Sequence record: LT960552.1
Strand: one strand, 5' to 3'
DNA: 64,000 nucleotides
In this document: piece by piece, positions 1 to 64,000 of the stretch
How positions within the stretch are numbered: the first letter of the stretch is position 1
How the letters are laid out: every line of letters begins with the position of its first letter
Translations under genes and position numbers: made by a program
Notes under the pieces: model-generated
What the model was told of the DNA's origin: nothing
Databases searched by the model: none
Seen by the model: only the letters and a program-made list of their open reading frames with translations

Positions 1-119
1 GAAGAAATGACACTAGATGGAACTCGCTTAAGTGCAGTTCTTGGTGAGCATTATGATGTTCTTAGAAGTGGTAAAAATTATATTGTTGGAATTAATGGGC
101 GATATATCGTATTAAGATA

Positions 120-914
120 ATGAAAATATATAATATGTTAATTGCACTACATGAAAGTACTAAAACACCTTTACATCAATACGGTAATGTTGGTTTAAGT
201 AAGAGATTATATGTAAGAACTTACGAAATCAATAGAATTGGTAAAAATTATGATAACATCAATCGTAGTGATGTTGGTACTGAACTGGTTTTAAAAGCAT
301 ATTTGGCTCGTAAAGTTTATATTAATGAACAATACCTACGAGGTAGGTTTTTAATTGATGAACTATATGAGAAAGAAGTTCAGTTCACTAATGGTTTATG
401 GAGAATATTCTCAGTTGAAGTCTTTGGGGAATTGCTACCTGAACTACCTGTGCCGACAACATACAAAGAATTACAACATATTTTTGATCATAGTGATGTA
501 TATAAAGAGTTCAACTTATATACTACAGTTAAAGAAGCAGTTATTCATAATCAAATAGCAGATTCAGACAAATGCGTCAGTATGCGAGATTTTGATTTAT
601 TTTGCTCATTACCAGGTAGTACTGGTTGGACTTCAATACAACATGGTGCAAGTTTAGTTGATGGTAGAACTGAAGCTCCACAACGATTATTACAAGCATG
701 TATGGGTATGTACCGATATGAGTTTATAGGTTGCCCTGAACCGTATGAAAATTTTTGGAAAGAACGTGCTTCACTAGCAATGAAAAAAGCTATTGCAATT
801 TTAGAAAAATCATATATAATAAAATTTAGAAATGGAACGATGTACGGCATGACGCCAGTACCGGAACGATTTGAGCCAATATCGTCCTTCCATTGGAACA
901 TAAAAAGGACGTGA
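120..914 (+). CDS. hypothetical protein (264 aa)
   Basis: Long ORF followed by a terminator; no recognisable motif. Confidence 0.8.
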   Translation: MKIYNMLIALHESTKTPLHQYGNVGLSKRLYVRTYEINRIGKNYDNINRSDVGTELVLKAYLARKVYINEQYLRGRFLIDELYEKEVQFTNGLWRIFSVEVFGELLPELPVPTTYKELQHIFDHSDVYKEFNLYTTVKEAVIHNQIADSDKCVSMRDFDLFCSLPGSTGWTSIQHGASLVDGRTEAPQRLLQACMGMYRYEFIGCPEPYENFWKERASLAMKKAIAILEKSYIIKFRNGTMYGMTPVPERFEPISSFHWNIKRT

Positions 915-934
915 ATTTATTTTCGTCCTTTTTT
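902..934 (+). terminator. intrinsic terminator
   Basis: AAAAAGGACG...CGTCCTTTTTT inverted repeat with T tract. Confidence 0.7.
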
Positions 935-1004
935 ATTTTCTACTTGACAACTGTGTATTTTAAGCGTAACATGTATCACATGAACACAGCGTATCAAAAA
1001 GTAC

Positions 1005-1033
1005 TTGACAACATGCTGAGTCCAATATATAAT
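1005..1033 (+). promoter_or_regulatory. sigma70-type (early) promoter
   Basis: TTGACA-N17-TATAAT. Confidence 0.85.
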
Positions 1034-1066
1034 ATTTAGAGACAAAACATCCAAAAGGAAAAAACA

Positions 1067-1633
1067 ATGAAAACTGTAACTTTCGTATACACCCAAGGTA
1101 TTTCTTATAAAGCAACCAACGTTAATGAAATTAACTCTGATGGGTACACAGTAGATTATACTCGTCAGGTACAAAACGAATCTGGTACAGTTGTAGGGGG
1201 CGATTTTCGTTCAGTCAGTACTGAAGATTTGTTGTATGCTATTGTAAAAGACCATAGTACTGGTATTGTATCAATCATTCCTGGTATCTATGATAATTTT
1301 GATGTGGTGCCTAAAGGTAATGCAGTAACTCGTCAAGAAAACATCGATCGTGAAGCTGAAGACGTTGCTTATGCTCGTGCACTAAAAGCACCAGAACGTG
1401 CAGCAAAAGAACAAGCTAAATTCGAAGCTCGTCGTTTAGCACGTAAAGCAGCATGGGAAGCTAATAATGGGACTACTGAACCAACAGTACCAGTTGAGCG
1501 TTTTCAAACTGCTATTGATACACGAGTAACTCAAAAAGTTTCTGCACTCAGTTCTGCTGTTGAGCAATTGATTTCGGCTGGTGTGTCTGAATCTGATATC
1601 GAAGTACTTAAATCATTAAATGTATTAAAATAA
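1067..1633 (+). CDS. hypothetical early protein (188 aa)
   Basis: ORF with AAGGA SD downstream of a consensus promoter. Confidence 0.85.
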   Translation: MKTVTFVYTQGISYKATNVNEINSDGYTVDYTRQVQNESGTVVGGDFRSVSTEDLLYAIVKDHSTGIVSIIPGIYDNFDVVPKGNAVTRQENIDREAEDVAYARALKAPERAAKEQAKFEARRLARKAAWEANNGTTEPTVPVERFQTAIDTRVTQKVSALSSAVEQLISAGVSESDIEVLKSLNVLK

Positions 1634-1662
1634 TTTGACATTCAATTAAAAAAGGATATATA

Positions 1663-1863
1663 ATGGAAACCGGAAAATACATCGTAGTATCACGTGATAA
1701 ATCCACTCGTCGCTGTTCAATGTCAGCAACACCAATTGAACATGCAACTGAGGCTTTGGCTAAAGCTGAAGCAGCACGGTTAGCACAAAATAACCAAGAA
1801 AAAGATTTTACTGTGTTGCGTGTTACTGCAACAGCATCCGTTGATAAAGTTACTTGGCGTTAA
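1663..1863 (+). CDS. hypothetical protein (66 aa)
   Basis: AAGGA SD; followed by hairpin 1871-1891. Confidence 0.75.
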   Translation: METGKYIVVSRDKSTRRCSMSATPIEHATEALAKAEAARLAQNNQEKDFTVLRVTATASVDKVTWR

Positions 1864-1924
1864 ATTTCATGGGGAGTTAACATAACTCCCCAATTTTTAA
1901 GTTATATTAGCGAGATTAAAAATC

Positions 1925-3061
1925 ATGAAAGGCAAATATTTTTTCAAAGATGAAAATGGTTTTCCAGTCGAGATTCAAGAATTTGATTATGAATATGTTC
2001 GTAATTCTTTACTAAAGGTATTTGATAAAAATATCGCGAAGAAATATATCTTTAATGTTATCGTTAATCGCAACCATGATTCTCTTGGATTGCCAGTTTT
2101 TGATGTTCGTCCATTGAATTTAAATGATATCTATTATGATAGTACTCGACTTCGTGTACTAGAAATGATGTTAGATGATATATATTTTGGTCGCATTTCA
2201 ATTAAAGAATTACCAGTTCCTAAATTGCAGCATGAATACCAAGAATATTTAGAGGGACGTGCTAAACCAGCTCCAGTTCCTGCAATTCCAGATGTTCCTG
2301 CACCTATTGTTTTTACACGAGTTGAAATTAGTGAAAATGATGAACGTATTATGCAACTAGGAACAGTAGAATCAAATGTTCCAATTGTTCCAATGAAAGT
2401 ACTAGACTGGATTGACAACTTTGAAGTATGTAGTCAAGAAATGACTGTTAATACACAAAAGTTATCAGAAGAACAAATCCGTTTAGTTCAAGTGTTGAAA
2501 ACTAACAGTGATTACATTCATAGTGTATTCTCTAATTTAACTTCAGTACTTGAGGCAATGTTCCCATTAAAGCCATCATTCACACAACGGTTATTTGGAA
2601 CTACTAAAGATATCGAAGTTAAACAGGATGATTTAGGAACTATTTTAAACACACTACGCAGTGCAGTATCAGTTGACCCAAATCGGTTTAGTGGTATAGG
2701 GGAAGTGTTTAAAAATATTCAAAATAGTATTCAAGAAATAAAAAATACGGTTGAACAAGGTGTTATTGGATGTAAGTTTGTAATTCAAACCACTGAAGAT
2801 GCGTATGAATTTGAATTGCGTCAAGAACGTTTGATGAAAATTCGGGCAACTACTGAAATTTCAGAACTGTCACTTGTAAGTATCAATAAAAAGTTTCTAT
2901 CTGATTTAAATAAGTTAAAAGAAGTGCAAGAAGTTGTAGTTCCTTTACTTATTATCAAGTTACAAAATCAAGCAACTAAAAAAGTTGATGATGAAACAGT
3001 TAATATCATTCGTAATTTGGCATATAGTCGTGATTCCGAAAAAAGTTCAGACCAAAAATAA
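1925..3061 (+). CDS. hypothetical helical protein, possible TelA partner (378 aa)
   Basis: Helical C-terminal half with TQRLFG segment loosely resembling TelA-family proteins; adjacent to TelA. Confidence 0.55.
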   Translation: MKGKYFFKDENGFPVEIQEFDYEYVRNSLLKVFDKNIAKKYIFNVIVNRNHDSLGLPVFDVRPLNLNDIYYDSTRLRVLEMMLDDIYFGRISIKELPVPKLQHEYQEYLEGRAKPAPVPAIPDVPAPIVFTRVEISENDERIMQLGTVESNVPIVPMKVLDWIDNFEVCSQEMTVNTQKLSEEQIRLVQVLKTNSDYIHSVFSNLTSVLEAMFPLKPSFTQRLFGTTKDIEVKQDDLGTILNTLRSAVSVDPNRFSGIGEVFKNIQNSIQEIKNTVEQGVIGCKFVIQTTEDAYEFELRQERLMKIRATTEISELSLVSINKKFLSDLNKLKEVQEVVVPLLIIKLQNQATKKVDDETVNIIRNLAYSRDSEKSSDQK

Positions 3062-3088
3062 AATAATGGAAATTATTAAAGATTTTCA

Positions 3089-3117
3089 TTGACAGGTCAT
3101 TAGAGTGATGCTATAAT
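3089..3117 (+). promoter_or_regulatory. sigma70-type promoter
   Basis: TTGACA-N17-TATAAT with TG extension. Confidence 0.85.
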
Positions 3118-3173
3118 CTTTTACATCAAGACGGCACACTCTCCCATTAACTTAGAAATAAAGGAATTACACA

Positions 3174-4310
3174 ATGATTGACGATCATAATAATGGTTTT
3201 GAAGAAGAACGCCAAAAAGCAACTAAGCGTAATCGTAAACCACGTACAACAAAAAAAGCAGAACCAGTAACTATCGATCAAGATGTGTTTGAACAAGAGA
3301 CAAAAAATCTTCCAGTACTACGTGATGCTAAAGGCACACAAATGGAACTGACTGTATCAAATATCCATTCATTGGGTTCAGATGCTGGACAAAATATTGG
3401 TAAATTGTCAGAAGAAATTTTGTCTAAAGTTAAAGTTGCAGATACTGGCGAATTAGGTGAAGGTATTTCTAATATTCTTACCTTAACTCGCAAAGTAGAT
3501 ATTACTCGGTTAGGTCAACAACGTACTGGTATGCTTTCACGTGTTTGGAATATCTTTGGTGATACTAAGCAGAAAGTACTGGATCAGTTCGAAACAAGTA
3601 AAGACCAAATTGAAAAAATTACCAACACATTAGGTTCAGGTATTGACCGTATGCGTGGTGAAGCAACTTGGCTTGAAAATGCGTATGATGCTAATATTGA
3701 ATATTTGCATGAACTAGAAGATATTTTAGATAATGTCGATCTAGTAAAAGATATCGAAGATAAAAAGCTTGCAGTACTAATGGCAAATCCAGATACTGCT
3801 ATGAACGTACTGGATGAACAACGTATCATTACTGATGCATTAGATAAACAAGCTGATAAACTTCGTCGTTTAGTTCAACTAGCAAAATTGACTGCACCTC
3901 AAATTGCATCAATGCGTAAAGTTAACGTAAACACTGTTGAAAAATTTGAATCATTGAATACTGTTGTAATTCCTGCATGGAAAAATAATATGAGCTTAAG
4001 TCTCATTAGTTTGCAACAGAAAAAAGATAATGAATTATCAAATATGATTGACAATGAAACCAACCGTTTGTTAAAGGATAATGCAAAAACCGTGGCACAA
4101 AACATGAAAGATGCAGCAGCCGCAAACCAACGTGGTGTAATTGATTTAGGCACCCTACAATCAATTCAAAACGATATGTTGGCTGGTATTAAAGAAACAA
4201 TTCGTATCGAAGAAACAGGTCGCCAAGAACGTAAGCAAGCCGCTATCCAAATGCAAAAAATGGATAATGATTTGAAAACTGCATTACGTGATATTGCACA
4301 GAAAAAGTAA
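3174..4310 (+). CDS. telA: toxic anion resistance protein, TelA/KlaA family
   Basis: Coiled-coil protein with family-like segments (QIEKITNTL, TAPQIASMRKVN, VIPAWKNNMSLSL). Confidence 0.8.
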   Translation: MIDDHNNGFEEERQKATKRNRKPRTTKKAEPVTIDQDVFEQETKNLPVLRDAKGTQMELTVSNIHSLGSDAGQNIGKLSEEILSKVKVADTGELGEGISNILTLTRKVDITRLGQQRTGMLSRVWNIFGDTKQKVLDQFETSKDQIEKITNTLGSGIDRMRGEATWLENAYDANIEYLHELEDILDNVDLVKDIEDKKLAVLMANPDTAMNVLDEQRIITDALDKQADKLRRLVQLAKLTAPQIASMRKVNVNTVEKFESLNTVVIPAWKNNMSLSLISLQQKKDNELSNMIDNETNRLLKDNAKTVAQNMKDAAAANQRGVIDLGTLQSIQNDMLAGIKETIRIEETGRQERKQAAIQMQKMDNDLKTALRDIAQKK

Positions 4311-4331
4311 TAAAATAAGTACTAAAAATAT

Positions 4332-4357
4332 AAGGTTCCCAAATGGGAACCTTTTTT
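4332..4357 (+). terminator. intrinsic terminator
   Basis: AAGGTTCCC-AAAT-GGGAACCTTTTTT. Confidence 0.85.
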
Positions 4358-4373
4358 CATATGGAGAAAATAA

Positions 4374-4704
4374 AATGGATTCTATTTATACACAAGAACT
4401 TCTAGATAAACTATCTTCAATTTTAGTTGAATCAGATTTTGAAGATGATGAAGATGGTGATAATGATGAGAATATTAAATTTATAAAAGTTGAAGATGGT
4501 GATTGGTTTGATGAGGGTAAATGGTCTTATCGTGATGATACCTTTTTCTTTACTGATTTAAATGTATATGTAAATGTAGGACAATCCAGATCAGGTTCTT
4601 ACTATACAGACTATTATTATGATGATCCAAGTTTTTCATTTGTTGAACCTAAAACACAAACTGTAGTTACTACAATTTATGTACAAATTAAGGTAACACA
4701 ATGA
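4374..4704 (+). CDS. acidic hypothetical phage protein
   Basis: GGAGA SD before MDSIY; contains QSRSGSYYTDYYY motif common in small phage proteins. Confidence 0.7.
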
Positions 4705-5372
4705 AAAGTTATTGTTTAGACATTGAAACACTTGCTACTCCAGAATTATCAGGATATAGTATTGTAATTCCTAACTACGCTATTGTTAAAATTCCAGAAG
4801 TGCTAACTTCAGATTTAGAATGGATGTATGTTCAACTACCAATACAAGATCAACTTGATGTTAGTTTGAAGACTGATGCACCTACTATGAATTTTTGGTT
4901 TAATATTTGTGCACAAGAATTTCCACTTTCTTTATGTGAAATGCAAAAATCATTCACATTAAAGAATCCTAAAATTATTATCAATGGTGAAGAATCTGAT
5001 TCTTTAAATGTACCACTAATGCTTAAAACATTTATTCATGGTTCAGAAAAAATTGATAATAATGTAAAAGTATATGGTAATGGTTGTCATTTTGATTGTT
5101 CAATCTTACAAGATAATCATAGAATTTTATTCGGAGAAGGAAATTTATGGCATTATAGTGCTCCTAACAATATTAGAACTTTACGTTTATTACTAAATGA
5201 ACAACAAGAAGAAGATATGAAAGAAGCCGTGCTTCCAGTACTAGAAAAATTTTGTTCAAGTTTTAATGAACAAGGATATACTTATGATTTATGTTTACAT
5301 AATCCAATTTTTGATGCAGCAAAAGAAGCGTTATTCGCATCGTATGTGCTAAATCTTAAAAAATCCACTTGA
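4701..5372 (+). CDS. DEDDh 3'-5' exonuclease
   Basis: LDIETLAT, YGNGCHFDCSIL, HNPIFDAAKEA motifs. Confidence 0.75.
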   Translation: MKSYCLDIETLATPELSGYSIVIPNYAIVKIPEVLTSDLEWMYVQLPIQDQLDVSLKTDAPTMNFWFNICAQEFPLSLCEMQKSFTLKNPKIIINGEESDSLNVPLMLKTFIHGSEKIDNNVKVYGNGCHFDCSILQDNHRILFGEGNLWHYSAPNNIRTLRLLLNEQQEEDMKEAVLPVLEKFCSSFNEQGYTYDLCLHNPIFDAAKEALFASYVLNLKKST

Positions 5373-5397
5373 CATAAAATACCTAATACTATATAAT
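5369..5397 (+). promoter_or_regulatory. sigma70-type promoter
   Basis: TTGACA-N17-TATAAT. Confidence 0.85.
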
Positions 5398-5401
5398 ATT
5401 C

Positions 5402-7123: not shown

Positions 7124-8608
7124 ATGATTAAATTAATACCCTTTAATATTTGGTATAATGATTTAGAAGAACTAATTTCTATTATTAACAACTCAAATTT
7201 AGAAGTACTAAAATATGCAAAATCATATAATTTTGATACATTTGCATTTTGTATGCCTGAAAATGAGTTGTTTCAATTTTCTATTCAAAAACCAGCAGAA
7301 CAATTTCAACAGACAGCAATTGGTATAAATGGCATATTGAATGCATCACCATACTTACTTTATTATTCGGTAACAGTATCCTTTACCAAAAACTTTATAG
7401 TTAAGTTAGAAGTAGTTGAGCATTGGAAAAGTCAAATTACTTCATATGAAAAACATACAATACATAGTGTTATATTTGACAAAGAACACATGTTGATAAA
7501 TGGCAACTGGTATAAAGTTGATTCACCAGAACCATTCATATATGATTTAAAAGATGAAGATATAAGTATTCTGGCAATTATTGATATTATGGAGAGGTTT
7601 AATCCACAATGATACATGAACTAATGCATAATAAAGATATAGATTATAATAAATTATTATCAGATACCTCTAAAGTACTTAAATCAATTTATGAGTTAGT
7701 AGACTTTAGTATTTTTAATTATATGACTGATAGTGAAGATTATATTGAAGTTAATAATGCTTTTAAAGTTATTAAAGATAAAAATAACATTATATTTTAT
7801 GGAAAATTAAATGAAGAATGCTTTTTAAGAATATGTTTTATTAATGAAAAACTTCAATTCGTTAAAATCGTTCATAATGCAAATTCCAAATTAATTTTAC
7901 AAATTCACATTGGTGATACAAAATTATTGATTAATGAAAGCTGGTTTGATAGAATGGAGTTCGAATCAAAGGCATTTCAACTGGACACTACTGAATTTTA
8001 TCCGTTCAGTTTACTTGAAATTAATGAATTGTTTAAAATTTTAGGAATTTAATATGTATACAATGGTTATAGTACTTCTCCTATCAGGAGCTAATATGTC
8101 TCCGACAGCAGTTACAATTGAAGGTTATACTTCATATGAAAATTGTAAAAATATTGGCGTTCCTGAAGTGAAAAAACGTTACGCAATGAGTTCAGTTCAA
8201 GTTAAATCGGCTGAATGTTTTTTGGTTAAATGAGGTGTAATTATGTTATGGTATATTCTTGTAATATTAATTTGTATTTCAGTAGATGTTTTAATTTGGT
8301 ACTTGTATCATTTATGGTTTCGTGAAGCTGAAGCTTTTGGATTAAAAGATTCTTTTATTGATGTACTTTTTGATAATCAAAAGAATTTTTGGAAATCAGT
8401 ACTTGTTTCTGTAATTATAGCTACATTAATATGTATTGTTCCATTATTTAAAATGGGTTCATGTTCTCTTAAAGGTTTTATAACAAATGCCAATACACAA
8501 TACTCATGGGTAATGAATGAATGTCAAGCTAAAAACGCCGCAGGGGTATATGTTGACATTGAACGCACACGTGGTATACCTTCAGACGATGTTCATGACG
8601 TACAATAA
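7124..8608 (+). other. four small hypothetical genes (7124-7612, 7609-8052, 8054-8231, 8243-8608)
   Basis: Tightly packed ORFs with SD sites or overlaps; terminator 8613-8635. Confidence 0.7.
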
Positions 8609-8649
8609 ATACAATCCCCCAATTGGGGGATTTTTGCTATGGAAAAGTT

Positions 8650-9135
8650 ATGTTTGAATTTGAAAAACCACCTATGTATAATCCAGATGAAGATGGGATT
8701 ACGCATATAAACATTTATAGTCAAGCTAAGACTGAACTTGGAAGACTACTATCTAACTTTGCATTATCTCCATTTATATATGAACCTTATGGTAAATTTA
8801 ATAGTGCTGAGGGTTTTTGGTATTGGTATCTTACTGGTAAACAACACGATACATTACGTTACTTATCAGGATTTGAAGCTAAAAAAGAAGGACGTAAATA
8901 TAGAAATGACAGGTTAGATGTATTAGGTTTAACCGATGATGATTTAGAAGTAATGATGCAAATGTTAGTACTGAAAGTGGCTTATAACCCACACATTGCG
9001 TCATTATTAAAAGAAAGTACTTTACCTCTCGTTCATTACTATAATTATAGTGGTAGAGTAATAATGTGTACTGAATTTGATTGGTTGTCTTCTGCTTATA
9101 CTGATATTAGAGAAGTACTAAACGAATCGAACTGA
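8650..9135 (+). CDS. NADAR-like hypothetical protein
   Basis: LSNF...FNSAEGFWYW motif resembling NADAR proteins. Confidence 0.45.
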   Translation: MFEFEKPPMYNPDEDGITHINIYSQAKTELGRLLSNFALSPFIYEPYGKFNSAEGFWYWYLTGKQHDTLRYLSGFEAKKEGRKYRNDRLDVLGLTDDDLEVMMQMLVLKVAYNPHIASLLKESTLPLVHYYNYSGRVIMCTEFDWLSSAYTDIREVLNESN

Positions 9136-18454: not shown

Positions 18455-21400
18455 ATGACTCTCGAAATGATTGTTTATATGTATGGTGAAGCATCACTTA
18501 TTTTCAATTATATCAATACTCATAACTTAAATGTTGACAGTGTTAAATTAATATATTCTAATACTTCTAATACTAATACTATGGTTATATATGTTTGGTG
18601 CAATGAAGAACAAAAAGAAGAAATGATTAAACTAAAAAATATAGAGGATACTGTACTATAATGAAACTAATTGAAACATCTGAAATGAAATCGGTACAAT
18701 ACTATGGCTTTACTTTTATAGTTCCGATTTGTATTAAATTTGCGGCAGTTGATGCAGATGGAACATTAATGGGATTCCAAGAAAAACCTATAGTTGAACA
18801 TAGTTTGCAGATTTGGGATAATCCAACATGTAGCGATATGTATGATATGGGTAAAGTGGATCTAGAAGGTCAGTCATGGGAAAGTACTTTACAAGTACTG
18901 AACTAAAATGTATAGTACTGCACAAGTTGTAGTACTTTTTAATTAAGGTAAAATTATGGTATTAAACATATTATTAAAATACTTATATTTTCAACTTACT
19001 AAATTAAAAAATTGTAAAATATTTTATTTTATAGCAATATGTATGCCAATTGGATTATTGTTAAATGCAATATTATGTGATTTTATTTTTAATGCATCAA
19101 TATTGACAAAATCTGTAATAATGATTATATTATTATTAATACAAATAGGTTCAATGTCCTATTATTTTTATCAATCACGTAAGGGATATCTATGAAATAT
19201 TTTCGTGTTAATGAAACTGATGCATCTGGTATTGGTTTAGATTTTTGGGCATATTTTGAATTACAAGATACTGATGATATCGATGAAGCAATTTCATTAT
19301 TTGATGAATTGAATCATTGGGTATACTCATTAGATTGCCGTCGAACTAAAGCGGAAGAGATTACCGAAGCACAGTATAAAACTGGTTTACAGTTCAATAA
19401 TTTGTATAATAATTATCATGGTCTTAATTATCTACGTATTAATTTTAATCTGTATCCAACATATGATATGGCAGTAATGTTTGCAAATAAAGAACATCCA
19501 ACTGGATATGTTCGTATTGGTCATTTGAATTATCATAATGTGTACAAAGTGAATCAAAATGGTGATTTCATGTTTGTATATCATCATTGGATGGATCGTA
19601 TTGGAAAATTAGGTGTATAATAATGATTGAAGTTTATTATAATGATAAAACTGGTCGTGTAATGCCAGATGGTCATGTTATTCAGTACTGTACTGAGCAA
19701 GTGCAAAAAATTGAACATGTTGATGAAGTTGGATCTGAATTTTTGTTGATGGCATATCGTTATGCAATGAAAATTAATAATATCCCACATGATACTATTC
19801 GTTTTCATTTTGATCATGAAGATTATGGACATAATACTGTAATACTTGATGAAGATTATAATATGATCTGTCCAGAAGGTGAACGTTTTATGTATCCTAA
19901 TTTGAATATTAAAATGTTGATGGAATTCTTTTGATGATAACTATAATTTTTGATAAAGACAATGGAATATCAATTCCAGATGGTAAAGTGGTAGAGTTTG
20001 CTAATTCAGTACTTGAAAAAGATGAAAGTACTATTATTATTAGTCAACAGCTTATCCTTGATGCTATTCGTGCTATGATTTTTCAACGTTCATACAATGT
20101 AGATAATATAAAACTTGAAGTACATGATAATGGTGTAATAACTACAGTTAAAATTAATAGTGATTGTAGTTTAGAAAACTGGAAACCATTTCCAGAAATA
20201 CAATCAAAAATGTTATATATTTTATGTGGTGGAAAATGATAAAAAATAAAGAATTTATTATACGGTGTGATTGTCGCGATCATAGAGAACATAGTATTCA
20301 TATAGGCCAGTACAATAGTGGTGATCAATATGATGATGCAAATCTTGGTCAATGTTTAATCAATATGTCATTGGAGATACGTCTTCCTTGGTATAAGCGT
20401 GTATTGGTTGGTTTAAAATATATGTTTGGATATACTAATCATCTTCACTATATTGATACAATTGTAGATGTTGAAGTACTAAAAAATGTAGTTCAAAAGT
20501 TAGATGATAATCGTACTGATGAACAAAAACTAATTTCAGCACAAGATCGCCAAGACACTACTTTTGAGATTTTATGATGGAAGTGTTAAATAATATTTTA
20601 AAACTTGACTATTTTTCAAACTTAGTTTATAGTACTACTGATAATAAAAGTATTTTTCAAGTTAAAATCATATACCCTGATTTTGAAAAATATTTAATAA
20701 TTAATAAAATAACATCAAAGCGTGACAAATATTGCACCTTAATCACGGATAATTTTTCATTAATATATGATGGCATTTCATTTATGTTGATAGATAGTGA
20801 TGGTATTTTATTAGATAAAATTGAACCATCCATATCTGAAGAATGGTTTTTTCAACAATCTGTTGTTAAAAATTTTAGTGCAGTTGAATATGAAGATATA
20901 AAATTGTTAAAAACTGTTCATTCTAAATTATGGGGTGTATAATATGCTAAATCCAATTTTTGAAACAATGCTAGATCCAGATAAAGCATATATGAGATTT
21001 GAACGCTATGATGGTGTGCGTGGAATATTAACCATAAGTACTGAAACGCATGAAGTTCAAATAACAGATAGTTATATAAAATTGGACGAAGTACGTTATA
21101 ACCAAAATTTAGTAAACTCATATCATGGTGTTCCTATATACCGTAATTTAATTGTAATGATAGATTATAACTTATTTTTAGAATCAAATAGCGATGAAGT
21201 ACTAGGAGTATCTAAAGATGATGTTACTATTATTCTTGAATATTATAAGAGGTTAGGATGAGTAGATACAACATACTTTCAAATTTTGATGTTAATGATA
21301 TGAGAAGAACATTTGATGAATTTTATGAATATAAATCTGTAGTTAATGATGAAAAGTATATGTGTTTTTCAAGTACTATTGAGTTATTAGATGATCTTGT

Positions 21401-28352: not shown

Positions 28353-28931
28353 ATGAAAGTTACATTACGTAAAGCACATCGTTTAGTAAAAGAATTGCAA
28401 TCAAAAGTTTCAGTACGTTTTGAACAAAAAGATGTACACCACTCCGCAACAGAGCATGAAATACGTAATGCAATTTCAGAAACTCAAACTGAAAGTTTTA
28501 AATCTGTTCGCCGTGCATTAGAAATTCAAGAAGTTATTTTTTATATTCGTCAAAGTCTACAAAATGCAAATTCACAGAGTGTGGATGGAAATACGGTCAA
28601 TTCATTATTGAACCAAAAAGTTCTTATTGAAGCACAAATGAAGGTTCTTTCTTCATTTCGTGAACCATCAAAAACAAAAGATGAAGACTCTATTAATCGA
28701 GTACTACGTGAAGTAAAAGATAATCATGTAAGTACTTCAGAGTATCGTGACACGTACACACGTGTTAGCGGGTTATCTTCTGTTATGCATGATAATTTAA
28801 ATAACCTTTATGTCTCATTGAAACAAGAGCAAGAAAAAGTTAGTGATAATTTAGCTTACATTAACAACAAACTTGAAATAGAAATTAATGACAGGTACAA
28901 CGAGTTGTTAAAAGAACTACAAGTACTTTAA
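28353..28931 (+). CDS. coiled-coil hypothetical protein (MKVTLRKAHRL...)
   Basis: GGAGA SD; heptad-rich. Confidence 0.8.
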   Translation: MKVTLRKAHRLVKELQSKVSVRFEQKDVHHSATEHEIRNAISETQTESFKSVRRALEIQEVIFYIRQSLQNANSQSVDGNTVNSLLNQKVLIEAQMKVLSSFREPSKTKDEDSINRVLREVKDNHVSTSEYRDTYTRVSGLSSVMHDNLNNLYVSLKQEQEKVSDNLAYINNKLEIEINDRYNELLKELQVL

Positions 28932-28976
28932 GTATGTCATCCGGTGGATGAGGTACTAAGGGTGTAAAAGCCCTGA

Positions 28977-29183
28977 TGCTGATGAAGCAGCATTGATGAA
29001 TTTCAATGCATACCCTAAGCTGTTAAACGCTTATTGATCAATTACATAGTGTAATTAAACTGAAGAGTTTGCTCCGTTCATTCTAAACAGATATATTCTA
29101 TCTTGCTTGGTTGTGGAAACGGTATATCTCGATTGTTGTATTGCTTTATTGTACATTTGAACTGTTGCTTCGCTTCATCGGCA
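28977..29183 (+). ncRNA. structured 3' element with 8-nt periodic TTG repeats
   Basis: 12-bp closing helix 28977-28988/29172-29183; TTG at 29133, 29141, 29149, 29157, 29165. Confidence 0.5.
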
Positions 29184-29230
29184 CAATCTTTTTGTCTACG
29201 TTTTTATGTTGATTATAAAAATGTAGTACT

Positions 29231-29312
29231 GCTGCCTTCCCATAATTGGTATTGGACCGCACTTGTAATGCGGCGGGGAAACCCATTCTCGGTTCAAGTC
29301 CGAGGGGTAGCA
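29231..29312 (+). tRNA. tRNA-Thr(TGT) with long variable arm
   Basis: Loop CTTGTAA, V arm GGG-GAAA-CCC; ends A-CTA. Confidence 0.8.
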
Positions 29313-29465
29313 CTAATTAGTTATTATATGGCCGAAGTCACACTCAATGACTATAAATTTGAGTGTTTTATAGAGATTATACAGCAGAAGCTGTTTCGAA
29401 GAAATTCTGAGGCAAGTCAGCCAAGAAACAGAATGATGAAATAAAAAGTACTACGGTACTTTTAT

Positions 29466-34587: not shown

Positions 34588-37346
34588 ATGAAACCCAATG
34601 CAATGAATAATGCAAACCTATATTGGTTTATTTTCTTTTGGATTGCATTCACTGTAGTAAATTTATATATTAATATGTATAAACCACAAGTTTATTATGA
34701 AAAGAAACTTGCTGATGCGGTTAAATTTGAACTAAAGAAAGTTGATCCTGTTCGACAAAATGAGCCAGCATACATTGCGTTATTACAAAAATTACGTATA
34801 AATTGTGTTAGTGCAACCGATAAAGAAAACAATACCTTTTATTCATGTCCAACTGGTGAAAAGGTGAGTATGATTAATTGGACACGTGGTGACAAGAAAG
34901 GCGTAGTTACTCGTGAATATAATAAAGATGACACCTTAATATTAATATACGGACACCCTGATGATGTTTACTAAAATTGAAAATTCTGAAGTACTAATTA
35001 AAACTTCTTTTGGATATAAGGTACTTCCATTGTTTGTACGAAATAGTACTAAACAGGTGTATGCAAAAAATGGTCAATATTATATTGCCATATTAGTATC
35101 CAAAATAACAAGTAATGCTAAAATTAGTTGGCAGGAAATTAATATTCCTGAAAACTTTGAAAAAGGCCATTTGGTCTATAACGAGTAATAATGAAATCAA
35201 TTTATTTAACGAGTACCCATAATAGCCGTACTTTTATGCTTACCAGCTATGACCCAAAGACAATTATTATGTTTGAAAATCCAGTACAAGAGATTGACAT
35301 TCATGGTAATAAACTAGTATACTATACTACAATTCAAATTCGAAAGATGTGAGATTTATATGACTAAAGTTGTTCGTAAGCGTCGAGTACTTGATAATGA
35401 TGAATTTAAATCAAGAGAAATTCATCGCCAGCTATGGCGTCGTCTTTGTGCTGGAGAAAAACAAATTGTCGTAACTGAAACTTATGTTGATCCTGAAAGT
35501 ATATTTGGAACTTATTTTAAAGTGTTCAATCATTTTATTAAAAAGGGACTACTTGAAGTAATAACAATTGATCAGCTAGATCCATCTGAACACGAATTCA
35601 CAGTAATTAAATGAGGTAATTTATGTCTTGGAACAACCGTGTAATTATTAATGAACATACTTATATTGATGGTGAAAAAGAAAGTACTGCAACTATGCAT
35701 GAAGTACATTACACCGCCGATGGCGTAATGTTTAGTGGTGTTCTTTTTCCACAAGGTTCAGGTACTGATAGTACTGAAGCACTTCAAGCATTGAAGTTAG
35801 AACTTCAGATGATGCTTGAAGCGGTAGAATTCGTACTTGATGGTAAAACTTCTATTTTTGACTATGATAATAAAGATACGCATGATGCGGGTGAACATTC
35901 TGAAATTATTCGTAAACGAAATGAAGTTAAAGTACTTGATCGTGATGATGCATATCTTGATGAAAAATATGGCGACGAATAATGAATCTATATCATGAAC
36001 TTGAATTTTTAAAAGATTCACAAGTAAAGTTGATTGAACAAGTGCAGAATTTGCGAAATCGTAGTAATGAATCACTTGAAGAGGGTGCTACATATCGTTT
36101 TGTACTATGTAATGCTAAAATTAGTTTTTTGAATTCAATTATTCATGATATTGAATTTGCCATGTCTGGACATGCACCGGACATTGTGATACAATCTACC
36201 ATAGATGCCGTAATGCATGTTGAAGAAAATTTCAAGCCATTTTTAGGCCAATGTGGTTCTGATTGTGATCCTAAAAAGGAGAATAAATGAATAATAACTT
36301 AAAAGAATTATTAGATGCTGCATTAAAAGACATTAAAAATATGTCTACTGATGACTTCTTTGAAAAAATGTATGGTTACAATCCAGAACAGTTGAAAGCA
36401 TATACTGAAGAAGTATTTTTGGTAGAACTTCAGTACTTGAGAAGTTTCTTTGTGGATGGTGCCTATTCTTTTGAACCAAGTTATGACAATCTTCCAGTAC
36501 CCGAAATTACTAAATTATTTTGGAATTATATTGAACGAAATGCTCGTAGCACCTATGAAGATTCAACTGAACCATTCCCTACATATTATGTAGAATTGCC
36601 TAAGTATGGGATTCGTCTAACACATATACATGGTCAAGGGGTTATTACGGTTGTTGAAGACTTTGATTATTCAGATCCTATGTATATTGTAAAAAATATT
36701 ACTCGATTTAAACGTGAAGCAGCATGGGAACACCAACGTAAAATTGATGAATTGTTGTATGATAAACCTAAGCAATTAGATGAAGTACGATTTAGTACTG
36801 AAATAAATGGTATTGGTATTGTAGATACGGGTATTGTAGAACGTGTGTATACTAAAAAAGGTATAGTACGGTACTTGATTGATTCGGTACATAATGGTAA
36901 AGTACTCGTATTTCATAGTGGTGGAAACAAATACCCTATGGATGCAGTAGAAGTAACTGTACTTCACCCTAATAATTATAATAGGTAATACTATGGAAAT
37001 TGATTTTAATCTTGTTCGTGAATTGACACATGCATTAGAAATGAATGGTCGTCAGTTTATTTTACGTGATTTAAAAATTCAAGAAATGAAAGCTAACGGT
37101 ACATATGATGTTAAACATAATCAGGATTTAATTTATTTTCATATAGTTAGTTCTAATATAAATTCAGTACTTGAACGTATTTTTTGGTACTTCGAACATA
37201 AAAATAAATCTGATATTTTAGAATTATCTTTTAGAAATTTAGTTATAAGTGCATATAATGATTATAAAGAGTTTTCATCTCATTGTGATTTTTTATCAGA
37301 AATGGATCGTAAATATAATTTAAATGCACTTGGCTATTCTCATTAA
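34588..37346 (+). other. block of hypothetical genes (34588, 34961, 35360, 35623, 35982, 36287, 36993)
   Basis: Contiguous ORFs. Confidence 0.7.
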
Positions 37347-49471: not shown

Positions 49472-49592
49472 GGCGAGTTAGCTCAGTGGTAGAGCACGTA
49501 GAAACCAAGGATTCTAGTACTAGATTCCCGCAGCAACAATAACTCATACTATGATAAAGTCGTGGTCGGGGGTTCAAATCCCTCACTCGCCG
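49472..49592 (+). ncRNA. interrupted tRNA-like RNA with CAT loop, ACAGCA family
   Basis: Insert GGATTCT-AGTACT-AGATTCC + GCAGCAA; CTCATAC. Confidence 0.8.
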
Positions 49593-58083: not shown

Positions 58084-58088
58084 GTATT

Positions 58089-58390: not shown

Positions 58391-58443
58391 GTATTAATTA
58401 AGACATAAATATTCTTATACATTATTTTTGTAGGAATATAGAT

Positions 58444-59043: not shown

Positions 59044-59049
59044 AAAATT

Positions 59050-59169
59050 TGGAATTCAACAGCAAATCATTCAAAACACGTAGCATGTCGTAGGTTCAAG
59101 TCCTACCAGTACTTAATTGTACTGTAGCTCAGTCGGGAGAGCAGCCACCTTAAAAAGAAATGAATTCCA
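59050..59169 (+). ncRNA. circularly permuted tRNA-like RNA, ACAGCA family
   Basis: TGGAATTCA/TGAATTCCA; T arm, CAGTAC/GTACTG, D arm TAGCTCAGTCGGGAGAGC. Confidence 0.85.
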
Positions 59170-59326
59170 GTATTAATTACAAAGAGAACCAATAATGTAC
59201 ACTAATATTTTTGATATATTAAAAGATTTAACAGTGTTTGGAAAAGTAACATATCCAGTAAAATAAAATAATTAGGTTATTTCGAAGTTCTAAAACAACG
59301 AAACATTTACTAACGTAAAAAGAATT

Positions 59327-59385
59327 TGGAATCTATCAGCAACCATAACCCAATCAAACATTTAATTTGACAATTATGGATTCCA
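59327..59385 (+). ncRNA. minimal ACAGCA-family RNA, near-copy of 56401-56457
   Basis: TCAAA-CATTTAA-TTTGA. Confidence 0.7.
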
Positions 59386-59407
59386 GCCTATTTTTTGGAG
59401 TACAAAA

Positions 59408-59674
59408 ATGTATTATGCTCGGTTAGAACATCCTGATAATGGATATGAAATTGAAAGAATACATCTTAAAACCTTAGATTGTGAAAAGTACTATCCAGTA
59501 TATTCAATTAATATTGGAAGTTGGAGTACCAGTGTATATCTTAGAGATGATGAGTATGAATATAATAGTGTAAACTTTGAGTTCTACATCAAAAATGGAG
59601 ATGAATATATTCTCGAAGATATTTTCTCAGACCCTGATTTAAATCCGTACTTGATAGAAGACGATGAAGAATAA
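59408..59674 (+). CDS. hypothetical protein
   Basis: GGAG SD. Confidence 0.7.
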   Translation: MYYARLEHPDNGYEIERIHLKTLDCEKYYPVYSINIGSWSTSVYLRDDEYEYNSVNFEFYIKNGDEYILEDIFSDPDLNPYLIEDDEE

Positions 59675-59688
59675 ATATCACAAATAAA

Positions 59689-59717
59689 TGAAACGATTAA
59701 AAAATTTGTGGTATAAT
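59689..59717 (+). promoter_or_regulatory. TGAAAC-N14-TGGTATAAT promoter
   Basis: Upstream of tRNA-Asn. Confidence 0.8.
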
Positions 59718-59740
59718 ATAAGTAAGAAAAACAACAAGAT

Positions 59741-59813
59741 GGTTACGTAGCTCAGTGGTTAGAGCGTTCGCCTGTTAAGCGAGTGGTCGCTGGTTCAAAT
59801 CCAGCCGTGATCG
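59741..59813 (+). tRNA. tRNA-Asn(GTT)
   Basis: Loop CTGTTAA; ends G-CAA. Confidence 0.92.
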
Positions 59814-59861
59814 CAAATTGATGTTTGGTATGGTTTAAAAATATAATAACCAAACATTATA

Positions 59862-59904
59862 AAGAATCTTTCAGCATTAACACGGTGAAAATATATAGAT
59901 TCTT
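59862..59904 (+). ncRNA. minimal ACAGCA-family RNA
   Basis: AAGAATCT-T-TCAGCA...AGATTCTT. Confidence 0.55.
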
Positions 59905-59908
59905 GATT

Positions 59909-59985
59909 AGGAGATTAGCATAGATGGCCTAATGCACCGGTCTTTGAAATCGGTATCGGTGGTTCGAATCCACCATCTCCTGCCA
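59909..59985 (+). tRNA. tRNA-Gln(TTG)
   Basis: Loop CTTTGAA, CCA encoded. Confidence 0.9.
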
Positions 59986-60004
59986 ATTTAAGTAGAATAA
60001 TAGT

Positions 60005-60427
60005 ATGAAGTTATGTAAGAGATGTAATCAGAATAAGCCATTAGAAGCTTTTTCAAAAAATAAATCCAAAAAAGACGGATTACAAGTGAGTTGTAAGGAA
60101 TGTTTTAAAACAATAAACAACAATTCATATAAAAATGAATCTGGTGAACGTCGAAGAAAAGTTGGCGAGACTCGTGATAGAATTAAAGCTATTAATAGAT
60201 CGATTATATCAGAACATCGATCAGTAAATCCATGTCACTTTTGTGGAGAAACCGAACATTGTTGTTTAGACTTTCATCACTTAGACCCTACTGTCAAAGA
60301 TAAAGAAATATCTGTGTTGGTACATTATAGTACTGCTAGATTGGTAAAGGAAATAGCTAAATGTATAGTTATTTGCTCAAATTGTCACCGGAAACACCAT
60401 GCTGGTATTGAAGGTTACGAATTATAA
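60005..60427 (+). mobile_element. HNH-type endonuclease
   Basis: CKRC...CKEC; CHFCGE...LDFHHLDP...CIVICSNCHRKHH. Confidence 0.85.
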
Positions 60428-60568
60428 AGTTTTCATTTCCTTGGTGAAAACAAGCTGGCATGATTCCCCCTGCTTGTAAAATTATCGAACGGGAACCGCG
60501 TAGCACCGGTACAGGTCAGATTGTAAAGATCAAGTATGTACAGTACTGAGAGCGGCAGTACAAAAAAT

Positions 60569-60650
60569 GCGGGATTAGCTCAGTGGTAGAGCACTTGCCT
60601 TCCAAGCAAGAGGCGAATAGGTTCCATCGGTTCGAATCCGATATTCCGCT
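60569..60650 (+). tRNA. tRNA-Gly(TCC) with expanded variable region
   Basis: Loop CTTCCAA; 15-nt V region; ends T-CAA. Confidence 0.82.
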
Positions 60651-60769
60651 CAAATTAAACAAACAATAAGGTAAATCCTATGATGCTATAGAAAAACAGT
60701 ACTGGTCCTCCTGATAACTTTAATTCAGAACAAAACACTAAATTAAATATTATCCAAAAGGAACATACT

Positions 60770-61096
60770 ATGTTAAACAAAGAAAAATATATTACTGTAA
60801 AAAATACTTGGAAATTAGAAAAAGAGCATAACATTTTCGACCATGTGGTTTATAATGTTATTCGTGGCCTACCATCAGATAATGGGTTTGCACCAATTAC
60901 TGATAAAGGAAAACTTCAAGCAAATAATAACGACCCGTATAATATGTACAACTATGCAGTTCTTGAATTGCATTATGAGTTGAATGAAAAACGATACAAT
61001 TATGAAAAAACAGTACAACATTATTCTAAACTATTTGGCATTGAATTTACACCTGAACTTATCGAAGTAGTACTTACTTTGATTAAAGTTAAATAA
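60770..61096 (+). CDS. hypothetical protein
   Basis: AAGGA SD. Confidence 0.75.
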   Translation: MLNKEKYITVKNTWKLEKEHNIFDHVVYNVIRGLPSDNGFAPITDKGKLQANNNDPYNMYNYAVLELHYELNEKRYNYEKTVQHYSKLFGIEFTPELIEVVLTLIKVK

Positions 61097-61104
61097 CAGA
61101 ATTA

Positions 61105-61168
61105 AAGAATCCAACAGCACCCATAAATGAAATCAACTGTTAATTGAAAAATTCAAAAATGGATTCTT
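61105..61168 (+). ncRNA. minimal ACAGCA-family RNA displaying an Asn(GTT) anticodon stem-loop
   Basis: AAGAATCC/GGATTCTT; TCAA-CTGTTAA-TTGA. Confidence 0.7.
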
Positions 61169-61276
61169 GTTTTTATTTGGAAGTCTCATGAAAGATAATT
61201 TTTATGAAGATTTAAGATTTAGATATATTGAAGTACATGAATTTGACGTTATAGCACTGAACGTGCTATAATAGCT

Positions 61277-61350
61277 GGAGCCGTAGTTCAGTTGGTTAGA
61301 ACGCTTGCCTGTCACGCAAGAGGCCGTGGGTTCAAGTCCCATCGGTTCCG
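61277..61350 (+). tRNA. tRNA-Asp(GTC)
   Basis: Loop CTGTCAC; ends G-CAA; TTGACG-N17-TATAAT promoter upstream. Confidence 0.93.
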
Positions 61351-61367
61351 CAAAAATAAGGAAAATT

Positions 61368-61631
61368 ATGAACAAGAAAGCAAAAACACGTATTTTTAAT
61401 ACTGTTATAGAAACGTCACCAGACCATTGTAAATACAATTTTTGGTATCATAATATGCTTAGAAAAACAATTTTACTTATGTCTAAGGGTAAGTATCGTA
61501 AAACTGAAAAAGAAATTATACAAATACTTACTCGAAATCATGGTAAAAAACGATATAATCCTACACCAGAAGAACATGATGAAATGGTTCGTTTAGAACA
61601 AAGTGTTGGTCTAATGTGTGGTGTTAAATAA
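61368..61631 (+). CDS. basic hypothetical protein
   Basis: AAGGA SD before MNKKAK. Confidence 0.65.
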   Translation: MNKKAKTRIFNTVIETSPDHCKYNFWYHNMLRKTILLMSKGKYRKTEKEIIQILTRNHGKKRYNPTPEEHDEMVRLEQSVGLMCGVK

Positions 61632-61651
61632 ATTGGTAATAAAGAGTGTAA

Positions 61652-61985
61652 GGGTTAGTACTTAGTATCATATTCCCCCTCTACCTTCTTCCCCCATTAT
61701 TTGGGTTCTAGTCGTAGACACAATGTAGTACTTTATTACCCGCGAATTAATATTTTATTGTGGGGTGGTAAGAGTAAGATACCGATTCAAACAAGGGTCA
61801 GAAAGATCCACTTAACCCGTTTTGAAACAATAAAATATCCCGAAAGGGTGACGATGTGAATAGTGCATATCCTTGTAGTATGGGACAGTACTACATTTTT
61901 ATAAATAAATTGGAATAGAGCATGAGACTGCCCTCACTATTCGACGCTTTAAGTAGCTTTCTAGAGAGTACTTTCGGGTACTCAC
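61652..61985 (+). ncRNA. structured intergenic RNA candidate(s)
   Basis: Rod-like pairing 61652-61818 plus downstream hairpins. Confidence 0.4.
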
Positions 61986-62003
61986 CCAAATAAAATAAAA
62001 CAT

Positions 62004-62076
62004 GTTCTTATAGCTCAATTGGATAGAGTTGCCGCCTACGAAGCGGTCGATATAGGTTCAAATCCTTTTAGGAACA
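62004..62076 (+). tRNA. tRNA-Arg(ACG)
   Basis: Loop CTACGAA; ends A-CAA. Confidence 0.88.
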
Positions 62077-62096
62077 CAAAATTAAGGTAATTAAAG

Positions 62097-63443
62097 ATGA
62101 AATCACTAGTAGCTATGGTAAAAGACAAAAAAGTCTATTTTAGCCATTATCAAAACAATGAACTATGGTACAGTACTGAATGCGGATTTATGTTTCCGGT
62201 TCCGGTATCTGATACTGGTAATGCAGAATTTAAAAATGAAGATAAAGCTACGTTCTTTATGCGTTGGATTCGGAAACATCTTGAAATGATTGCTGATGAA
62301 AGTCAATCACAATCAGTTAATGGATGATTTGAAAATTATACATGATGTATTAAATGTGTACTACACCACTGGTGAAGATGCTCTACATTATGGCAACGTA
62401 TATTATGAGTACTGGATGCGACAATGCACCTTTATGGGAACTGGCTTTAACTTTACGGATGAATACATTCAGTTTGGTGAAACACGTTCCGATATAGATA
62501 AAGTACTTGATGAAGAATCACATTTTCAATTAAGTACTGTGTATAATTTCTACGACCTAACGTTCGAAGATATTACAGCACTTAAAGAAATCTATATATT
62601 CAAACGCGGGGAACCTACACCATAGGTTCCCTTTTTTATATCTGGAGTTTATGAATGGAAGATATTAATTCGACTATAGTAAAAAATACAAAGATAGTTA
62701 GAACATTTGAACAAATATCTTTTGACGATATTAAAACATACTTACCACATCTTAATGTAGTTAGTGGTACTAAAGAGTCAATGACAGGAAGTACAAAATT
62801 GTTTAGTATTTTCTTTTCAGATAGTGAATCTGTATTAGTCTCACGTGATGTTATCATGTATATATTTGATAAAACTTTTGTTAAATTTAATACTAATATT
62901 ACTGAAGAACAAATGTTCCAAGATAGTACAAGAGTTAATTATGGTAATCTTGCACCAGAAACTTTACCGTACTTGAGAGAGTTAATACAACTACTTGACC
63001 ATTTATGGAAATAAATTATGAATGTATTTGAAACGTGTTTTTTATATGCAAGTAAGGGTGATTCAAATAAAACTATTAGAAGTACAAATGACGATAAAAT
63101 TCTTTTCTCTTATAAAATACTAACTGAGTTTGATTCTGTAATAGAGCAAAATGTATGTATATTCATGATTGTAGTATATGTTGAAGATGATACTTTTATT
63201 TTTTCATTTGGTATATCTGAAGACTATCCTGATATTGGTATTTCAATTATGAAAGTACAAGGTAATATATCATTGCATTCCAGTGATGTATGCAACGTAG
63301 AAGATTTGGAAGCACGTTTATTCCAAATAGAAACTATTGTAGATGTACATGATTTAGATACTACGATGATAGATAAAATGTATAAGCTTCGTGAAATATA
63401 TTTGAAGAAAAAAGATGAAACGGTGCTGAATAATCTGGTATAA
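62097..63443 (+). other. four hypothetical genes (62097, 62320, 62655, 63018)
   Basis: Three carry the EE-x-x-FQ motif; terminator 62609-62637. Confidence 0.7.
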
Positions 63444-63444
63444 T
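63416..63444 (+). promoter_or_regulatory. TGAAAC-N14-TGGTATAAT promoter
   Basis: Upstream of tRNA-Pro/Pro/Val. Confidence 0.8.
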
Positions 63445-63456
63445 ATCAGTACCTTA

Positions 63457-63530
63457 CAGGGTGTAGGCAAATTGGTTTGTCACCTGCTTTGGGAGTAGGA
63501 TTAATGCTGGTTCGAGTCCAGTCACCCTGA
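63457..63530 (+). tRNA. tRNA-Pro(TGG)
   Basis: Loop TTTGGGA; ends A-CAA. Confidence 0.88.
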
Positions 63531-63539
63531 CAAATATTA

Positions 63540-63614
63540 CGGAGTGTGGGCTAATTGGCTAAGCCGCCTGTTTTGGGAACAGGAAAATTGTAGGTTCGAG
63601 TCCTACCATTCCGA
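63540..63614 (+). tRNA. tRNA-Pro(TGG), second copy
   Basis: Loop TTTGGGA; ends A-CAA. Confidence 0.9.
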
Positions 63615-63620
63615 CAAATT

Positions 63621-63694
63621 GCTTGTTTAACTCAGTTGGTTAGAGTGCCATCTTTACACGGTGGAAGTCATTAGTTCAAATCTAATAACAAGCA
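63621..63694 (+). tRNA. tRNA-Val(TAC)
   Basis: Loop TTTACAC; ends A-CAA. Confidence 0.92.
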
Positions 63695-63750
63695 CAAACT
63701 GAACTATTAAACTAAATATATTAAATTATAATAGTTTAGGAGTTCAGAAA

Positions 63751-64000
63751 ATGGAATGTTTAAATTGCGGTCATGAAACAAAAAATGTTAAGTTTTGTAG
63801 CAGATCATGTTCAGTGACGTTTAGTAATAAAAATAGAAAATTAAGTCAAGAAACCAAATCCAAAATATCTAAGAAGATGCAAAACAAAGTAAATCCTGAA
63901 GACATTAAACAATGTCATACTGATGGGCTTACTGTTCCAGAAATAGTTGATAAATTGGGTTGTACTAAAACAACAGTGTATAAATGGTTAGAATTTTATG
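63751..64000 (+). mobile_element. probable homing endonuclease, N-terminal part (cut by window edge)
   Basis: MECLNCG...KFCSRSC...LSQETKSKISK, like the N-terminus of 49658-50290; HTH-like segment follows. Confidence 0.65.

Follow-up and report, generated by a model that had tools for sequence, protein, structure and literature searches.

Does the six-letter palindrome AGTACT, which recurs throughout a 64,000-nucleotide stretch of phage DNA (here called the window), carry a function of its own, or does it follow from base composition and coding content? The window corresponds to positions 248001 to 312000 (offset, 248,000) of the 352,596-bp genome of Yersinia phage fHe-Yen9-03 (accession no. 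LT960552.1; genus Eneladusvirus), a RaK2-like jumbo myovirus whose whole genome we used as context. The first 20 kb of the window align to this genome with 100% identity, and the rebuilt genome contains the entire window. The excess of AGTACT is real and old, it acts on the DNA itself, and it is selected. We propose with moderate confidence that selection maintains AGTACT as a recognition word at the DNA level, most likely the predicted binding site of a dimeric sequence-specific protein. Literature searches for a description of this excess found no such paper.

Abundance of AGTACT in the window and the genome

AGTACT occurs 174 times in the window (2.7 per kb), compared with 13.3 ± 3.3 copies (maximum, 21) in 100 dinucleotide-preserving shuffles. 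An earlier note on this DNA had pointed out the overrepresentation and listed 15 copies, 9 within positions 1 to 3000 and 6 at about 34980 to 35940, and every one of these positions is exact. The word is the top-ranked hexamer of the window by order-1 z-score and the strongest outlier under order-0 to order-3 models (21, 14, 29, and 65 copies expected, respectively); the excess is absorbed only by an order-4 model, because the 5-mers AGTAC and GTACT, themselves enriched products of AGTACT, then enter the model. A..T flanks surround 174 of the 410 GTAC cores in the window, and the excess therefore belongs to the whole palindrome.

Genome-wide, fHe-Yen9-03 carries 1,012 copies versus 87 expected under an order-1 model, an 11.7-fold excess; the next most enriched palindrome reaches 2.6-fold. 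Host DNA has about 20-fold fewer copies than phage DNA. Each 10-kb bin of the genome holds 11 to 65 copies, and the dispersed sites, about one per 350 bp, are separated by near-Poisson gaps (coefficient of variation, 0.94), which rules out a repeat family or a local cluster as the source. Nearly all other GC-containing six-letter palindromes have been purged from this genome: 22 of the 64 palindromic hexamers have zero copies, and the tetramer GCGC is absent both genome-wide (145 expected) and in the window (39 expected).

Independence from coding sequence

Coding effects were assessed on a simple gene call of 523 open reading frames (91% coding). The earlier note had allowed that the enrichment might vanish under codon- and dipeptide-aware null models, but it persists: when synonymous codons were shuffled within each gene, coding AGTACT fell from 138 to 34.2 ± 5.4 (maximum, 47) in the window and from 880 to 203 ± 12 in the genome (z = 56), and codon permutation gave 121 ± 10 for the same 880 genomic copies. 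Together, the synonymous and codon-permutation shuffles rule out a codon or dipeptide artifact. The reading-frame distribution that the note had also called for points the same way, with an excess in all three frames and in intergenic DNA; genome-wide, 457 copies read as AGT-ACT, 314 as xxA-GTA-CTx, and 108 as xAG-TAC-Txx, and 133 are intergenic or at gene edges. AGTACT is in fact denser between genes than within them, at 3.4 versus 2.6 per kb in the window and 4.2 versus 2.7 per kb in the genome.

The word also distorts protein sequence, raising Ser-Thr and Val-Leu. Codon usage predicts 117 uses of the AGT-ACT codon pair, about a quarter of those present; the Ser-Thr dipeptide occurs 759 times versus 499 expected (498 for the reverse order, Thr-Ser), and Val-Leu occurs 731 times versus 564 expected.

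Conservation, neighboring words, and flanking bases

We examined conservation of the word in a 288-kb alignment of fHe-Yen9-03 with Serratia phage BF (83% identity). Of the AGTACT sites, 66% are unchanged at every base in BF; the 458 frequent control hexamers average 40 ± 8%, and none of them is more conserved than AGTACT. Silent third positions also vary less when they lie within AGTACT than when the same codons occur outside it (identity for GTA, 0.90 versus 0.63; ACT, 0.82 versus 0.65; TAC, 0.78 versus 0.54; the preceding NNA, 0.90 versus 0.72), and intergenic copies have a per-base identity to BF of 0.93 against a background of 0.87. AGTACT is under purifying selection at the DNA level.

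A different origin for the excess is molecular drive, in which biased mismatch repair, gene conversion, or polymerase bias turns near-cognate words into AGTACT and leaves sites that are functionless, a process put forward for HIP1 and for very-short-patch repair. With 1,000 sites, the selection acting on any one of them must be weak, and drive is therefore a serious alternative: a thousand weakly selected sites would be more easily kept in this way, near-random spacing is in keeping with it, and equilibrium word frequencies are unable to separate drive from selection. However, none of the one-off neighbor words of AGTACT is drained, although repair of the very-short-patch kind acting on one neighbor might have depleted it; transition neighbors stand at 1.1- to 2.8-fold, and the word costs amino acid changes; on these and further grounds given below, we regard drive as quite unlikely. 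The neighbors are instead graded, with outer-base variants at 1.5- to 2.8-fold and inner-base variants at about 1-fold, a pattern that resembles a binding-energy (affinity) landscape.

The bases next to the word follow a rule of their own. At position −1, C is enriched 1.8-fold and G is reduced to 0.36-fold, such that GAGTACTC has 2 copies and CAGTACTG has 88.

Paired boxes in early promoters

Pairs of AGTACT boxes show a spacing peak at 20 to 21 bp that resolves into a fixed promoter layout. AGTACT comes after an A-tract and is fused to a −35 element of the TTGACA or TTGCAT type; about 14 bp further on, a second AGTACT stands 1 to 2 bases before TATAAT. We count 11 such two-box promoters in fHe-Yen9-03 (2.2 to 13.8 kb), 11 in BF, and 16 in RaK2; they are confined to the early region and lie just inside the terminal repeat; the fHe-Yen9-03 search gave 12 forward-strand matches, the one at 324 kb being doubtful. 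A study of the related phage CBB classes these early promoters as RpoD-like, each with an UP-like element, and the boxes go unmentioned (PMC5259590). The palindromic boxes hold fixed places relative to −35 and −10 and are conserved across genera, as operators would be. The claim in the earlier note that copies occur in promoters is borne out in the window by a single-box version of the layout (Table 1).

At the early promoters, boxes 20 to 21 bp apart (two helical turns) abut the −35 and −10 elements of strong sigma-70 promoters, and a protein bound there would be predicted to overlap RNA polymerase and so switch them. The early region also encodes an 80-amino-acid protein (fHe-Yen9-03 positions 8448 to 8690) that both BF and RaK2 conserve and that matches a ParE-like toxin domain (E = 9e-12).

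Box arrays at the genome terminus

The first five boxes of the terminus array of fHe-Yen9-03 are the only strongly phased AGTACT cluster in that genome. Arrays of 3 to 6 boxes are found in related phages as well (Table 1), with the 10/20-bp phase in fHe-Yen9-03 and RaK2. In CBB, BF/fHe-Yen9-03, and fEgEco12, the array stops 11 to 21 bp short of the left physical end, where the long direct terminal repeat begins. A short, conserved, C-rich sequence with CTA as its last bases comes next. The CBB record includes both copies of its 22,456-bp terminal repeat, the BF record ends with the box array and starts at the homologous base, and the termini of fEgEco12 are experimentally confirmed (PMC13070987). 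Judged from these records, in three genera the box array abuts the point of left physical end formation, and RaK2 is alike at the homologous position. Repeated boxes beside a physical genome end are the arrangement of a packaging array, and this one may mark the genome end or assemble the complex that makes it. A small open reading frame upstream of the large terminase gene (fHe-Yen9-03 positions 197221 to 197721) is also kept in a Vibrio phage relative that is unenriched in AGTACT.

The promoter and terminus placements also speak against molecular drive, as boxes are held at fixed places across genera in which the intervening sequence has diverged.

Distribution among phages and an independent prophage family

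The AGTACT excess is clade-wide in enterobacterial RaK2-like phages; all genera tested carry 853 to 1,356 copies (GAP32, 1,011; BF, 1,072; CBB, 1,235; XbC2, 1,105; Hallingskeid, 1,313; RaK2, 937; 121Q, 903; SE_PL, 853; XaC1, 1,356). The reported hosts of the enriched phages are Enterobacterales, except for XbC2 and XaC1, which were isolated on Xanthomonas. Vibrio, Pseudomonas, and rhizobial relatives are without the excess (Vibrio phage 2.275.O, 81 copies; PA5oct, 15; Phosso, 15; Atu_ph07, 25; RsoM2USA, 62), even though the capsid protein of Vibrio phage 2.275.O is as similar as that of RaK2. Classic coliphages are all mildly depleted (T4, 29; T5, 23; T7, 4; lambda, 5; FelixO1, 20; rV5, 16), and RB43 (HE858210.2), RB49 (AY343333.1), and Dickeya phage JA29 (NC_048053.1) have no AGTACT at all in 164 to 253 kb, compared with 70 to 81 copies of the reversed word.

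A pattern scan of IMG/VR recovered two syntenic proviruses of 29.5 and 31.8 kb, with about 45% amino acid identity to each other, that contain 85 and 103 AGTACT copies versus 9 and 11 expected and zero GCGC. A relative in Mangrovibacter plantisponsor forms a 34-kb island with 90 AGTACT copies and zero GCGC, whereas 55 kb of its host flank has 8 AGTACT copies and 5 to 6 GCGC per kb. When 215 jumbo-phage core genes were compared with this prophage family by profile and BLAST searches, only a lysozyme, a tail-fiber chaperone domain, and the NPPF methyltransferase discussed below were common to both; the Mangrovibacter prophage family is an unrelated, independent case of AGTACT enrichment. The two groups have the same flank logo, with C up and G down at −1 and T up at −3 or −4. 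The Mangrovibacter prophage (contig positions about 51000 to 85000) has 32 to 40% GC in a chromosome of 52% GC, with very sharp borders. GCGC is also missing from RaK2, BF, and this prophage, and the Vibrio relative shows zero palindrome avoidance.

This distribution adds a further difficulty for molecular drive. The lytic jumbo phages bring a T4-type replisome of their own (PMC5259590), the small prophages are assumed to depend on host replication, and it is therefore hard to point to one mutational enzyme that both would share.

The same distribution raises another reading, that the reader of the word is a protein of the Enterobacterales host, exploited or titrated by the phages, and that two unrelated phage families converged on one cellular factor. 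The same word and flank logo recur in RaK2-like phages and Mangrovibacter prophages with no common candidate DNA-binding gene; apart from XbC2 and XaC1, the enriched phages are reported from Enterobacterales, and the Vibrio relative, with its RaK2-level capsid similarity, is unenriched. The word is fully purged in RB43, RB49, and JA29, and it therefore matters in enterobacterial cells. Against this, host flanks hold AGTACT at roughly the expected low rate, most enterobacterial phages make no use of the word, and we know of no enterobacterial protein other than SlmA with AGTACT in its site. SlmA requires G1, T2, and a purine at position 3 (PMC3020112). Such flanks are rare at the phage sites, where GT.AGTACT.AC occurs at 3 of 1,012 copies and G at −1 is disfavored, and we reject SlmA as the reader. 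Overall, a host reader of this kind seems unlikely.

Candidate writers and nucleases

A methylated word would be a further way to account for the excess: AGTACT, or its GTAC core, could be the target of a phage adenine methyltransferase, with the methylated word as the real mark. A Dam-family (PF05869) enzyme (fHe-Yen9-03 positions 28864 to 29403) occurs in all of the RaK2-like genera sampled but not in the unenriched Vibrio relative, and the RaK2 paper reported two methyltransferases and some methylation (PMC3622015). However, the Dam-family gene is absent from the AGTACT-rich Mangrovibacter prophage; its nearest non-jumbo homologs are in Geobacillus, Clostridium, and Lactococcus 936 phages, and a search of viral contigs for distant homologs recovered RaK2-like contigs only. 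The second enzyme, the NPPF adenine methyltransferase (fHe-Yen9-03 positions 73953 to 74696; 247 amino acids), is found among RaK2-like phages only in fHe-Yen9-03/04 and GAP32. It shares about 50% identity with a methyltransferase located at the border of an unrelated, AGTACT-rich prophage of the Mangrovibacter type and is otherwise widespread in RB43-, RB49-, and KP15-like phages; missing from most enriched relatives and with homologs in the zero-AGTACT phages RB43, RB49, and JA29, it is rejected as the AGTACT writer.

The search for an AGTACT or GTAC methyltransferase that the earlier note had suggested thus found no family common to all AGTACT-rich genomes. In addition, fHe-Yen9-03 and BF have purged GGTACC and CGTACG, evidence against blanket protection of GTAC in these two phages (RaK2 retains 49 copies of GGTACC), and methylation alone would be no reason to multiply sites. 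We consider a methyl mark very unlikely, with the Dam-family enzyme as the remaining candidate writer.

A ScaI-like nuclease (PF09569) had no homolog in the phage, RaK2, either provirus, or the host, a weak result given that 14 control genomes had none either. A TetR-type reader (PF00440) was likewise rejected, with no homolog in the phage, RaK2, BF, or either provirus; the sole weak TetR match belongs to an HNH homing endonuclease without conservation in relatives.

A predicted recognition word and its putative reader

Taken with the purifying selection described above, four features favor a dimeric sequence-specific binder of AGTACT: the fixed positions at promoters and termini, the palindromic form, the graded neighbors, and the flank rule. 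We infer from the sequence both the binding of the word by a protein and the effect of that binding, and the putative reader could be encoded by the phage or by its enterobacterial host. The approximately 1,000 dispersed sites would serve to load or concentrate the reader along phage DNA, not host DNA.

Several results weigh against a dedicated binding protein. In addition to the weak selection on each site, the near-random spacing gives no rule that would suggest a structural role. No DNA-binding protein common to the two AGTACT-rich families was detectable among the 215 core genes, and 91 genes have counterparts in RaK2 and BF but none in the Vibrio relative; Pfam and PHROG scans of 40 of these found no DNA-binding domain, only enzymes or nothing. 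An 84-amino-acid basic protein encoded in the window (35360 to 35614) is 83% identical to its RaK2 homolog, as conserved as the capsid, and restricted to RaK2-like phages. For this protein (35360 to 35611), however, the AlphaFold model has a moderate predicted local distance difference test score (pLDDT) of 71, Foldseek gave no match, and Atlas returned sub-threshold matches only; no result marks it as the reader, and we set it aside.

The earlier note had suggested two kinds of role, a mark for a phage methyltransferase or repair system and a site for a DNA-organizing or packaging protein. The second fits the purifying selection, the paired promoter boxes, and the terminus array; the first fares poorly, given the undrained neighbors, the absence of any match in the weak ScaI-type search, and the lack of a common methyltransferase.

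A broader version of the recognition-word reading is a speculative possibility that we offer tentatively: AGTACT may be a sequence-encoded self label, with one reader that switches early promoters, defines the end for packaging, and coats or protects the replicating genome. If true, a host factor was possibly captured independently by two phage families and tells phage from host DNA. The label would then be a modification-free counterpart of the self-marking of T4 by hydroxymethylcytosine, and it would explain the full erasure of the word in other enterobacterial phages.

Comparison with known systems

The earlier note had likened the excess to HIP1 (GCGATCGC) of cyanobacteria, and as far as statistics go the likeness holds: both are short palindromes in order-of-magnitude excess, genome-wide, in coding and noncoding DNA, independent of frame and codon use, and unexplained in function. 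Beyond statistics the comparison fails, as no methyltransferase family occurs in all AGTACT-rich genomes. HIP1 is an 8-mer of cellular genomes that contains a known methyltransferase target, whereas AGTACT is a 6-mer in phages that purge palindromes, with fixed places in promoters and at termini. The SlmA site (GTGAGTACTCAC) of Escherichia coli nucleoid occlusion has a central AGTACT, a dimeric helix-turn-helix reader, and the same host order, but the phage word lacks its GT..AC preference. The terminus arrays recall the phased, protein-bound repeats next to the terminase cut at lambda cosB and SPP1 pac, where a series of boxes likewise stops at a short, set distance from the site of genome-end formation; those repeats are confined to the packaging site, while AGTACT also occurs about 1,000 times genome-wide and in promoters.

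Protein p6 of phage phi29 coats the whole phage genome, represses an early promoter, and acts at the genome ends. In these three respects it resembles the reader proposed here, but p6 reads bendability rather than a defined word, and neither a p6 homolog nor another reader was found here. Chi, KOPS, and uptake sequences are also dense, dispersed words, maintained by selection or drive and recognized by a DNA-processing machine; these are asymmetric and orientation-biased, whereas AGTACT is palindromic, orientation-free, and in a virus.

Restriction pressure normally removes short palindromes from phage genomes, and here one is kept at a 12-fold excess and bends proteins. An excess maintained despite the palindrome purge points to a strong, undescribed use of a DNA word, for which the promoter and terminus placements provide concrete handles for finding the reader. 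Such a reader may control early shut-off, end formation, or self-recognition across a clade of 350-kb phages. AGTACT is also a simple metagenome signature for RaK2-like phages and the prophage family, and its abundance predicts a weakness to ScaI-type restriction. The contrast between enriched and zero-copy phages suggests an unrecognized axis of phage-host or phage-phage conflict in Enterobacterales.

Coordinates and other features of the window

TABLE 1 Locations of AGTACT copies and box arrays in the window and in RaK2-like phage genomes
Feature	Location	Strand	Details
AGTACT dispersed, 174 copies	Window 1..64000		64 AGT-ACT, 53 xxA-GTA-CTx, 21 xAG-TAC-Txx, 36 intergenic or gene edge
Single-box version of early-promoter layout	Window 1000..1005	+	AGTACT adjoins annotated −35 signal (1005-1010)
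Four-box AGTACT cluster	Window 18883..18936		Spacing 11, 20, 17 bp; end of g365, upstream of g366
Six AGTACT copies	Window 34990..35936		Word positions 34990, 35045, 35386, 35683, 35770, 35931
AGTACT at hairpin apex	Window 49516..49521	+	Extended palindrome, insert of tRNA-like gene
fHe-Yen9-03 terminus array	351854-351943		Boxes at 351854-351929: five, spaced 10, 20, 20, 20 bp; sixth 41 bp further
RaK2 array	224707-224815		Same 10/20/20 spacing, just upstream of early region, homologous position
CBB array	355780-355923		Four boxes, end 17 bp before first base of terminal repeat
fEgEco12 array	353640-353740		Box array beside start of terminal repeat

Only two clusters of at least four AGTACT boxes exist in the fHe-Yen9-03 genome, and one of them lies in the window (Table 1); in BF, only 2 of its 4 boxes are retained. 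At the end of the window, a gene at 63751 to 64000 that continues past the window to 64422 encodes a homing endonuclease of the HNH type that contains a helix-turn-helix motif. BF, RaK2, and the Vibrio relative all lack this gene, and a mobile insertion is therefore its probable origin. Finally, a tRNA-like gene at 49472 to 49590 has an insert of about 50 nucleotides in its anticodon region. The insert forms a hairpin (fold z = −2.7) that is an extended palindrome around AGTACT, in agreement with the earlier remark that copies fall within hairpins of noncoding RNA.

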